The notes under the pieces are model-generated. The model did not search any database. It was not told where the DNA came from and worked only from the letters and a program-made list of their open reading frames with translations. A program made the position numbers and the translations under genes. From IMG/VR virus record IMGVR_UViG_3300032287_004484, positions 124,001 to 188,000 of that record: 64,000 nucleotides of DNA. The stretch is one strand, 5' to 3'. Below, one piece after another: positions 6,838-61,388 of the stretch (its first letter is position 1; each line of letters begins with the position of its first letter).

Positions 6838-7836
6838 TTACATCCATTCTTTATTTTTAAGAGTCCAATCTACTAAATGTTTCAACCCTTCTTCAAAAGA
6901 GAAGGGTGGAATCCAGCCTAAAGATCTTAAAAGAGCATCATTAATTCCATATTTTCGATCATATCCAGGACGAACTTTAGAATCGTCAATGGTATCTATT
7001 GGATAAACATTTATATTCATTATATTAGCAATTTTTTGAATTAATTCTAAATTATTAATTGAATCATTACCAGCAACATTAAATTTAAGAGGAGTTTCAA
7101 GAAAATTTTTTTTCTCGTAAAAAACTGGATCTACTTTATTATCTATAAATATAAGAGCATCACTTAAATTTCTACAATCTAAATAAACTCTTGATCCTAC
7201 TTTTCCACCAGAAGTATATACTGGTATAGTTTTACCTTGACTAAGGTATGAAATTGTTTTAGGTATCATTTTTTCTGGATTCTGCCTCTTACCGAACATG
7301 TTCATGCAATGAATTATAATACTTGGTATTCTATATGTTCTCCAATAAGAAAAGATTATATTATCTTGAGCTGCTTTACTAGCACTATAAGGATTACTAG
7401 GGTGATACTCCCACCCTTCTCGATGGAGATCATCTCCAAAGACTTCTCCATAAACCTCATCAGTAGATAGATGAATAAATTTAGATGGATTTATTTTTCT
7501 TACAAAATCTAAAACGCTTAGTATTAATTGAACATTATTATTAATAATATCATCTGGAGATTCGACTGATGTTGCTACACTAGAATCACTAGCAATAGAA
7601 AATACAGTATCTATGTGTCCTATTTTAGAAATTAAAGTTTCACTAAATGGAACTCTTAAATCATGTCTAAAATTAGTATAATTAGGATGATTATTAAAAA
7701 TTAATCTTTGAGAATCACCTTTTCTAGTTAGTGAATCAATTCCTATAACTTGGTATCCTCTACTGAGGAGATCTTCAACTAAGTGATGTCCAACAAAACC
7801 AGAACTACCAGTAACTAAAACTTTTTTTATATCCAT
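6838..7836 (-). CDS. rmlB: dTDP-glucose 4,6-dehydratase
   Basis: GSSGFVG, STDEVYG, PSNPYSASK, QNPEKMIP, RPGYDRKY. Confidence 0.88.
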   Translation of the reverse strand: MDIKKVLVTGSSGFVGHHLVEDLLSRGYQVIGIDSLTRKGDSQRLIFNNHPNYTNFRHDLRVPFSETLISKIGHIDTVFSIASDSSVATSVESPDDIINNNVQLILSVLDFVRKINPSKFIHLSTDEVYGEVFGDDLHREGWEYHPSNPYSASKAAQDNIIFSYWRTYRIPSIIIHCMNMFGKRQNPEKMIPKTISYLSQGKTIPVYTSGGKVGSRVYLDCRNLSDALIFIDNKVDPVFYEKKNFLETPLKFNVAGNDSINNLELIQKIANIMNINVYPIDTIDDSKVRPGYDRKYGINDALLRSLGWIPPFSFEEGLKHLVDWTLKNKEWM

Positions 7837-59391: not shown

Positions 59392-60213
59392 ATGCCAGAA
59401 GCACCAGAAATAAAGATGTATACTGATTTTTTAAATTATATCTCTGAAAAATCGTCTTGTGTTGGAATCCAAAAAATGCCTCAATCTAAAAATAAAGATA
59501 TATCTTTTTCTGTTTTAGATCCAGAATTAGGTATTCCATCACTTAAGTTACGATTTGAAAGTAAAGGTAAAGAAATAGGTGCTAATTTTTTACACGAAAA
59601 CGGATCATTGTATAAAAGGTATCTTTTTCAAATGGGAATGAGTGGTTATTGGTTATTATGTGACGAACCATCTTTTCATAAAAATATTAAAATTAAAAAC
59701 AATACCGTTTTAAGATTTTTAATATATTCTGAACTTACAGATATTCATGGTTTTTTATGTTTAGTAGATACGAGAAGATTTGCTAAATGGAGCGAGGTTA
59801 CTCCAGATAAATGGGGTAATAATCGAGGTCCAGATCCTTTTTATGAGAGAGATCAATTTAAAGAGAATATTCTTTTTTCATTACATCAAAAAGATTTTGG
59901 AAAACCAATTTATGAAACTCTAATGAATCAAAAATATTTTAATGGAATTGGAAATTATCTAAGAGCAGTGATATGCGGAAGAATAGATGAAACACCTTTT
60001 CAATCAGCTCGTGATTATATTAAAAAAGATCCAGATTTATTTTTTGATACAATATGGCAAGTTATAGATGAATCTTACGATATGCAGATTAAAAATGCTA
60101 CTCCTTCTAATTGGTATAGTCCTTATGACGATAAAAAGGAAAAAAACTTAGAAGATTCAAATGGACGAAGATTTTGGTACAAGAAAAAGTGGGATCCAGA
60201 TAAAAATAAATAA
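59392..60213 (+). CDS. nei: Fpg/Nei DNA glycosylase, NEIL1-like (zincless finger)
   Basis: N-terminal MPEAPE, SKGKE, GMSG, DTRRF, H2TH LMNQKYFNGIGNYLRA, DSNGRRFWY with no Cys4 finger. Confidence 0.85.
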   Translation: MPEAPEIKMYTDFLNYISEKSSCVGIQKMPQSKNKDISFSVLDPELGIPSLKLRFESKGKEIGANFLHENGSLYKRYLFQMGMSGYWLLCDEPSFHKNIKIKNNTVLRFLIYSELTDIHGFLCLVDTRRFAKWSEVTPDKWGNNRGPDPFYERDQFKENILFSLHQKDFGKPIYETLMNQKYFNGIGNYLRAVICGRIDETPFQSARDYIKKDPDLFFDTIWQVIDESYDMQIKNATPSNWYSPYDDKKEKNLEDSNGRRFWYKKKWDPDKNK

Positions 60214-60699: not shown

Positions 60700-60751
60700 A
60701 AAAAAATTTAAAAAAAACAGATATTTTTTATTTAAATCCTATATAAAATAA

Positions 60752-60811
60752 TATAGAGATTATTGCTGATAAGGATAATCTCTATAAAAATTGCTCAAAG
60801 AGGATTTGAAT
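60752..60811 (+). promoter_or_regulatory. ROSE-like RNA thermometer in the hsp20 5' UTR
   Basis: 12 bp stem TATAGAGATTAT/ATAATCTCTATA, then hairpin AAATTGCTC-AAA-GAGGATTT pairing UUGCU with the AGGA Shine-Dalgarno (bulged G). Confidence 0.7.
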
Positions 60812-61264
60812 ATGACAACAAGTTTATCAAAAATTATTAATAACAACGGACAAAATCTTTTTTCTGATTTTGATTTTATTCTCACAAACTTTATGGATTC
60901 TCAGGGTCGATATAAGTTTGCTGAATCTTCTGGTTTTCCAAAATTGAACCTATATAGTTCTGAAACAGAAGATGGTAAAGTGAAGTACACAATTGAGGCT
61001 TCTATTACTGGATATGATAAAAATGATATAGATGTAATTGTAGATAGAAATAAATTAACTATATCATATAATAAAGATTTAGATAAAGATGAAGAAAAAA
61101 AGAATTATTTCTTACAAGAAATTAAGAAATCTTCTTTTTCAAGAAGTATTCTTTTATCTGAAAAATTAGATGTAGATAATCCTATCACATCTTATTCAGA
61201 CGGGTTATTAAAAATAGAGTTTTTTGAAGATATAAAGAAAAAATCTAAAAGATTAACATTCTAA
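60812..61264 (+). CDS. Hsp20/alpha-crystallin small heat shock protein
   Basis: FPKLNL, GYDKNDIDV, FSRSI, YSDGLLKI; ATG 60812 has a GAGGA RBS. Confidence 0.9.
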   Translation: MTTSLSKIINNNGQNLFSDFDFILTNFMDSQGRYKFAESSGFPKLNLYSSETEDGKVKYTIEASITGYDKNDIDVIVDRNKLTISYNKDLDKDEEKKNYFLQEIKKSSFSRSILLSEKLDVDNPITSYSDGLLKIEFFEDIKKKSKRLTF

Positions 61265-61274
61265 TTTTTTCACT

Positions 61275-61308
61275 TTTGACTCCTTAAATTTTACTTTAAG
61301 GAGTCAAA
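61275..61308. terminator. Stem-loop, probable terminator after hsp20
   Basis: TTTGACTCCTTAAA / TTTAAGGAGTCAAA perfect 14 bp inverted repeat. Confidence 0.7.
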
Positions 61309-61388
61309 TAAATAAAAAAAATTAATAAAAAAATAATCACAACGTAAAAATACTATAATCGCGAAATTTAACCTATAGGTGAGTATTA

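Follow-up and report, generated by a model that had tools for sequence, protein, structure and literature searches.

The leader of a small heat-shock gene (hsp20) carried by a freshwater jumbo phage contains two real and conserved hairpins that resemble a short bacterial ROSE RNA thermometer, in which the second hairpin is predicted to mask the ribosome-binding site. A leader of the same design precedes hsp20 in 16 of 18 sampled cultured phages, including cyanophages, pelagiphages, a Methylophilales phage, PA5oct and Atu_ph07. The structures and positions given in the original prediction were confirmed to the base. Its interpretation as a ROSE-like thermometer with a duplicated UUGCU/AGGA motif was partly supported: the anatomy and conservation agree with it, while the duplicated motif has to be read differently and the temperature response remains an inference.

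Genomic context and anatomy of the hsp20 leader

The window analyzed here is a 64,000-nucleotide stretch (bases 124001-188000) of a 290,274-bp IMG/VR virus record with direct terminal repeats and about 26% G+C. The record is a phage. The protein encoded by hsp20 was identified as a small heat-shock protein by profile searches (Pfam HSP20, 3.8e-12; phrog_432, 6.6e-21). The gene is followed by a gene for a 394-aa protein of unknown function and then by a T4 gp21-like prohead protease gene, and a tail-fibre-like gene lies upstream. A search of the isolate phage collection returned no DNA match and no protein match at 1e-5 for the phage of the window. The sequencing runs that contain the locus are labelled freshwater, lake-water and riverine metagenomes, and no RNA run contains it. 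The features of the locus are listed in Table 1.

Table 1. Features in and around the hsp20 leader (window positions; structures are predictions)
Position (strand)	Feature	Observations
59392-60213	273-aa ORF	Weak, sub-threshold Fpg/Nei DNA glycosylase matches (H2TH 5e-4, Fapy_DNA_glyco 2e-3)
60710-60729 (+)	A-run, six bases (CAGATA), T-run; possibly a promoter-upstream element or a weak A-U hairpin	Conserved upstream of the promoter-like box in both groups of relatives, even where the upstream gene is divergent (group 2) and no co-directional gene ends there, so not simply the terminator of the preceding gene
60743-60750 (+)	ATAAAATA box, 2 nt before hairpin 1; likely -10/T4-late-type promoter element	ATAA(A/G)ATA invariant in 17 relatives; 28:13 forward versus reverse strand bias at -45..-8 of genes in this genome
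60752-60786 (+)	Hairpin 1 (family hairpin I)	Arms 60752-60763 and 60775-60786 are perfect reverse complements (12 bp); UUGCU at 60763-67, AGGA at 60772-75; RNAfold gives a 13-pair lower stem ending in U60764.G60774, bulged G60765, C66-G73, U67-A72 and loop GAUA (60768-71); in relatives 12 of 14 pairs change on both sides and 95.6% of cells are paired; G.U wobbles fit only the + strand RNA
60788-60807 (+)	Hairpin 2, predicted SD-masking hairpin	ROSE motif UUGCU at 60791-95; pairs A88-U07, A89-U06, A90-U05, U91-A04, U92.G03, bulged G60793, C94-G02, U95-A01, C96-G00; loop AAA (60797-99); six pairs invariant in 17 sequences, basal pair A-U in 8 and U-A in 9; loop of 3-6 nt, variable
60800-60804 (+)	Shine-Dalgarno (SD) GAGGA, paired in hairpin 2	GAGGAU invariant in all relatives
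60812-61264 (+)	hsp20 gene (150 aa plus stop)	AUG at 60812, 7 nt after GAGGA and 4 nt after the end of hairpin 2; the TTG at 60791 is not the start, because its frame relative to the AUG is not kept in relatives
61265-61388	Region after hsp20	In group-1 relatives a 305-334-aa gene follows hsp20 within 2-12 nt; the window lacks it and has the hairpin at 61275-61308 and a TACTATAAT-like box before the next gene
61275-61308 (+)	12-bp perfect hairpin, likely transcript end, which would make hsp20 a single-gene unit here	Not called by a simple terminator scan because there is no T-run

To determine whether these structures exceed chance, we analyzed the folding of the leader and the distribution of similar elements in the genome. 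The 86-nt region folds at -16.7 kcal/mol with a z of -3.0, and 1 of 200 shuffled sequences was as good. Perfect hairpins of 12 bp or more number 31 in the 290-kb genome against 2-6 in Markov simulations, and 22 of the 31 are intergenic; most look like A-run/T-run terminators, but hairpin 1 does not. About half of the 410 ORFs have a 4-mer SD, and only hsp20 among them has a U(U/C)GC(U/C)...(A/G)GGA arrangement at a real ribosome-binding site, the one other match abutting a tRNA-like sequence. A scan for sigma-70 promoters and terminators found nothing upstream of hsp20.

Energy alone is not convincing for hairpin 2. It is the MFE fold only at 25 °C or below, with -4.9, -3.3, -1.6 and -0.5 kcal/mol at 10, 20, 30 and 37 °C, respectively. 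Its predicted SD masking ranks 53 of 204 and its predicted opening from 10 to 40 °C ranks 15 of 204, neither of which is exceptional for this AT-rich genome, and so a thermodynamic ranking of SDs does not single out hsp20. The reality of hairpin 2 therefore rests on comparative evidence.

Conservation and covariation in related phages

A word search identified 34 Hsp20 relatives, whose contigs fall into two groups. Group 1 (70-83% identity) keeps the gene order of the window, while group 2 (57-61% identity) has other neighbours. Group 2 shares eight ORFs with the genome of the window by tblastn, so these are related large phages, and the element travels with hsp20 into a different gene neighbourhood. 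The group 2 contigs (up to 209 kb) carry TROVE/Ro60, PilZ, a 7TMR-DISM sensor kinase, a cytochrome c peroxidase-like gene and a peroxiredoxin near hsp20. Protein-pattern scans of IMG/VR, JGI metagenomes and GTDB genomes gave few or no relatives, and no host could be named.

Seventeen distinct relatives (Hsp20 57-83% identical) keep the whole architecture, namely the box, hairpin 1, an invariant AUUGCUC, the variable loop, the invariant GAGGAU, and 5-8 bases before the AUG. Each sequence folds on its own into two hairpins, both with a single bulged G on the 5' side, and RNAalifold on a plain MAFFT alignment recovers hairpin 2 with the bulge, its basal pair being A-U in one group and U-A in the other. 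A covariance model built from eight group-1 leaders without the window (model R1) hits the window at 53.7 bits (E 4e-10) and group 2 at 29-45 bits, and it hits only once in the 290-kb genome. On the model-made alignment, 96.9% of cells pair against 41-59% when the partners are slid, 15 of 21 pairs show double changes, and 0 of 500 shuffles reach the observed values. This alignment held one stray minus-strand row; without it, hairpin 1 still covaries at most positions, while hairpin 2 is invariant except for the basal flip. It should be noted that hairpin 2 shows only one clear compensatory event plus a few loop-closing pairs, and that its otherwise invariant arms are also what a protein or sRNA site would show. 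The wobble pairs are G.U on the + strand only, which argues for RNA and not for a DNA palindrome.

Contigs of close strains from three other studies carry no difference in 60711-60832, while the flanking coding sequence differs at about 3-4%. A search of IMG/VR with the short DNA pattern ATTGCTC..GAGGAT..ATGA gave more than 118 matches, and of the 80 listed none fits model R1 or precedes an hsp20, so the pattern alone is non-specific. Among more distant metagenomic hsp20 loci, L004 and L006 lack the motif. A third such locus, L002, a metagenomic phage hsp20 (32% identical), keeps at 2816-2869 a bulged-G CC-GUAA-GG hairpin directly before its SD but has no U(U/C)GCU arm. Hairpin I can therefore occur without hairpin II.

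The comparison also corrects the reading of hairpin 1. The original prediction described it as capped by the same UUGCU-N4-AGGA motif as hairpin 2. These letters are real but specific to the strain group of the window, and relatives have (U/C)-G-CC...GG-G at this place. What is shared is a bulged-G module, which is also hairpin I of Rfam ROSE_3 and of E. coli ibpA. The top of hairpin 1 in the window (U.G, bulged G, CU-GAUA-AG) is a diverged form of this module and not a second SD trap.

A similar leader in cultured phages

The Hsp20 protein of the window finds only distant isolates, whose upstream regions show the same design. We then sampled the 507 phage records that carry an hsp20 like that of S-CRM01, adding 12 more. 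In 16 of 18 phages, hsp20 is preceded by a TATAAATA/TAAATA box at the same place, a hairpin made of a stem, a (U/C).G or C-G pair, a bulged G and CC-tetraloop-GG, a spacer of about 10 nt, and CU(C/U)GCUU, a loop and AAGGAG, again with a bulged G by prediction. The 16 are cyanophages Syn1, S-RIM44, S-RIM2, S-SM1, S-SRM01, S-SM2, ACG-2014d, ACG-2014f, S-SSM7, S-CRM01 and P-TIM40, pelagiphages HTVC008M and Mosig, Methylophilales phage Melnitz, Pseudomonas phage PA5oct and Agrobacterium phage Atu_ph07. The exceptions are Vibrio phage PWH3a-P1 and Salicola phage SCTP-2, which has a variant. In S-SRM01, the annotated hsp20 start (position 210 of the extracted locus) lies inside hairpin I, and the leader and its SD point to the ATG at position 261.

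The 61-nt S-RIM2 leader (positions 143-203 of its extracted locus) alone matches 282 cyanophage records at 80-100% identity, once per genome, at hsp20. Hsp20 proteins in the same set are only 31-46% identical to the S-CRM01 protein used as query, so that the non-coding leader is better conserved than the protein.

A scan with the Rfam ROSE models had been suggested beforehand as a check. ROSE (RF00435), ROSE_2 (RF01832) and ROSE_3 (RF02523) gave no hit at E up to 10 on the window or the genome, although ROSE_2 detected its control in E. coli. However, ROSE_3 gives hits exactly on six of the cultured phage leaders, below its 43-bit gathering cut-off: Melnitz (34.1 bits, E 5e-4), Atu_ph07 (28.0 bits, E 0.011), S-SM2 (24.9 bits, E 0.12), Syn1 (21.6 bits, E 0.78), S-SRM01 (19.2 bits, E 3.3) and S-RIM44 (18.9 bits, E 3.7). 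The ROSE_3 consensus has eight pairs, a bulged G and CCG-tetraloop-CGG in hairpin I, and CUcGCu opposite aGgAG in hairpin II.

A second covariance model built from nine cyanophage leaders (model R2) hits S-SSM7 (40.1 bits, E 1.3e-8), PA5oct (25.6 bits, E 1.1e-4), group 2 of the relatives of the window (20-23.5 bits, E 4e-4 to 0.003), L002 (19.3 bits, E 0.005), Atu_ph07 (18.5 bits, E 0.009), the E. coli ibpA-ibpB spacer just upstream of ibpB (17.4 bits, E 0.018; 6900-6975, minus strand, of the extracted locus) and Melnitz (16.0 bits, E 0.044). The region upstream of ibpB carries a thermometer of its own. Model R2 does not reach the window or group 1 directly, and the link of the window to ROSE_3 is therefore a chain from ROSE_3 to cultured phage leaders, then to group 2 and, through model R1, to group 1 and the window.

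Comparison with known RNA thermometers

The leader agrees with each sequence and structure criterion used in the literature for ROSE-like thermometers (PMC11182007, PMC3669281, PMC11342760): it lies in the 5' UTR of a small heat-shock gene, two hairpins are predicted in the window and in all 17 relatives with support from covariation, a U(U/C)GCU motif is imperfectly paired with the SD, and a wobble pair and a bulged G lie within the motif by prediction. For the functional criterion, that heat opens the SD hairpin and raises translation, the support comes from energy models only. The local geometry (U.G, bulged G, C-G) is that of the crystallised ROSE-like motif (PMC11342760).

The closest systems are the short ROSE-like thermometers of Pseudomonas ibpA (ROSE_3; PMC3669281), which share two hairpins in a leader of about 60 nt before an sHSP gene, a hairpin I with a stem, a bulged G, CC(G), a tetraloop and (C)GG, a hairpin II that pairs U(U/C)GCU with the SD with a bulged G, and an unpaired AUG. 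The window differs in that it receives no score from the model, has no G-C clamps around the motif, has CU/AG instead of CC/GG at the top of hairpin I with a much longer A-U-rich stem, is preceded by a phage late-type box rather than a sigma-32 promoter, and is predicted to be far less stable.

The E. coli ibpA and ibpB leaders (Rfam ROSE_2) are validated thermometers, and as a control we folded the ibpA leader with the same program. The top of its hairpin I is C-G, a bulged G and CC-UGAU-GG, like phage group 1, and its SD hairpin pairs CUC-G-CUG with CAG-GAG. The E. coli ibpA and ibpB leaders differ in having three hairpins and being G+C-rich, and model R1 scores the ibpA leader at only 13.3 bits, the best hit in 12 kb but not significant genome-wide. 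The ibpA SD hairpin has -5.6 kcal/mol at 30 °C and -3.8 at 42.5 °C. The phage relatives reach these values at about 8-18 °C and 20-32 °C, the weaker hairpin of the window at about -4 and 8 °C (for an 18-nt cut), and the cyanophage cores at about -1 to 6 °C and 12-21 °C. Predicted stability thus matches that of ibpA at temperatures roughly 10-35 °C lower, which fits the lake and river sources and suggests tuning to cool water. This calibration is rough and is inference only, as nearest-neighbour energies do not capture the non-canonical pairs of ROSE motifs.

The phage RNA thermometers named in the literature searched are lambda cIII, SPbeta blyA (fourU) and a sigma-70 fourU of a gut Caudoviricetes (PMC11182007). 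These are also phage-borne mRNA structures that gate translation by temperature, but they belong to other classes (alternative structures or fourU), control other genes, and none is ROSE-like or attached to a chaperone gene. In T4 late transcripts of the lysozyme and soc type, a late-type promoter also sits next to an SD-masking hairpin, but the late TSS lies inside the hairpin, so the late mRNA is open, while here both arms lie downstream of the box. Other genes of this genome do look like the T4 case: at 114590-114623, about 265100 and about 195530 of the record (outside the window), perfect hairpins pair the SD with an upstream complement and carry a promoter-like TATAAT/ATAAAATA box in the loop, the arrangement in which only transcripts that start inside the hairpin are translatable.

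Proposed function and alternative explanations

We consider it more likely than not, although with clear reservations, that the 70 nt before hsp20 form a short, two-hairpin ROSE-like (ROSE_3-type) leader. In this view, the box acts as a late-type promoter, as suggested by the T4-like late boxes at the same place in the isolates, and transcription starts a few bases after it, placing the stable hairpin 1 at the 5' end of the mRNA. Hairpin 1 would stay folded and is probably a folding scaffold and a protection for the 5' end, as proposed for Pseudomonas hairpin I (PMC3669281). Hairpin 2, a deliberately weak helix, would mask the SD in the cold and open as temperature rises, so that more Hsp20 is made when phage (head) proteins are more prone to aggregate. 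The anatomy, the conservation, the covariation, the uniqueness in the genome and the similarity to ROSE_3 through related phage leaders are established by our analysis, whereas the TSS, the temperature response and melting in vivo, the working temperature range and the benefit to the phage are inferred, as there are no experimental or RNA data.

It is possible, though unlikely, that the leader is instead a constitutive tuning and stability element, in which hairpin 1 protects the 5' end and hairpin 2 merely damps translation of an abundant late gene, with no meaningful temperature response in the range of the host. This cannot be excluded on present evidence: hairpin 1 sits right after the promoter-like box, 5' hairpins stabilise mRNAs (an idea also raised for Pseudomonas ibpA; PMC3669281), many genes in this genome have masked SDs by prediction, and with the full UTR the SD is predicted to open only at 38-68 °C in most relatives. 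However, it does not explain why exactly the ROSE motif with a U.G wobble and a bulged G, rather than any weak complement, is kept invariant across phages of cyanobacteria, SAR11, Methylophilales, Pseudomonas and Agrobacterium, and any such weak helix is intrinsically temperature-sensitive. A protein operator, bound by the sHSP itself, by a phage translational repressor such as RegA or by host CsrA, with temperature secondary, is somewhat less likely still. Two similar bulged-G modules and invariant single-stranded letters are typical of protein sites, IbpA represses its own ROSE-containing leader (PMC10474464), and the T4-type regA gene lies directly upstream of the hsp20 leader in cyanophages S-CRM01, S-SM2, ACG-2014f and S-SSM7. 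Against this, Arg93 of IbpA, irreplaceable for binding the leader (PMC10474464), aligns with Ser in five phage Hsp20s (with Q88, F95, R97 and L101 as anchors), and no regA neighbour is seen in the part of the window examined. A CsrA-regulated leader would present two or more conserved GGA motifs in loops, one of them at the SD. CsrA binding, raised in the original prediction because of the twin GGA motifs, is not supported, since twin GGA is absent in the relatives L029-L032, GGA lies in stems and no CsrA is found in the phage. A protein operator could nevertheless coexist with thermosensing rather than replace it.

Two further readings are very unlikely. Hairpin 1 is an inverted repeat between the promoter box and a chaperone gene, and its arms in relatives start with TTAG and end with CTAA, like the CIRCE operator of HrcA, a conserved 9-N9-9 inverted repeat; however, the arms covary instead of keeping a sequence, contain G.U wobbles and an asymmetric bulge, the core does not match CIRCE, and the phage has no HrcA. 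A weak match to the SAM-II riboswitch (RF01726) on 60750-60807 (19.4 bits, E 0.42, gathering score 44) is not seen in any relative, and the loop of hairpin 1 is closed by pairs in relatives, which leaves no pseudoknot partner. A chance structure is excluded by conservation.

More tentatively, with somewhat less than even likelihood, a ROSE_3-type leader driven by a late-type promoter may be an old and nearly universal companion of hsp20 in T4-like and other large aquatic phages, being found in at least 282 cyanophage genomes by sequence alone and also in pelagiphages, a Methylophilales phage, PA5oct, Atu_ph07 and this freshwater jumbo-phage clade. Its SD hairpin may be tuned to the temperature of each habitat, and its bulged-G hairpin I may be a second functional module shared with bacterial ibpA leaders. 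Phage morphogenesis would then carry its own RNA thermometer, and this would be the first ROSE-like thermometer class known in viruses. No paper in the literature searched combines cyanophage, hsp20 and thermometer, although an earlier report cannot be ruled out because subscription journals were largely outside that search. The element differs from described ROSE-like thermometers in being phage-borne and preceded by a late-type box, in being very A+U-rich and weak, and in lying below the Rfam cut-offs, and it extends ROSE-like elements beyond bacterial genomes. The hsp20 gene is a core cyanophage gene whose role is still guessed at, for example scaffolding during capsid maturation (PMC3037559). 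A conserved temperature-gated leader would say when the phage needs the chaperone, and would give a simple sequence handle, directly testable in cultured systems, on how phage infection responds to water temperature.

Other promoter-like motifs in the genome

Outside the window (e.g., at 2189, 33395, 110238, 198079, 243153 and 283498 of the record), about 45 genes are preceded by a strongly conserved TTTTTAGGTTTA(A/T)ACACTTA motif, followed some 20 nt later by a TATAAT-like hexamer. This motif is clustered towards the genome ends and is probably the early promoter class of the phage. A sub-class at 23-32 kb precedes a repeated gene family that starts ATGAAAAGAAAA.
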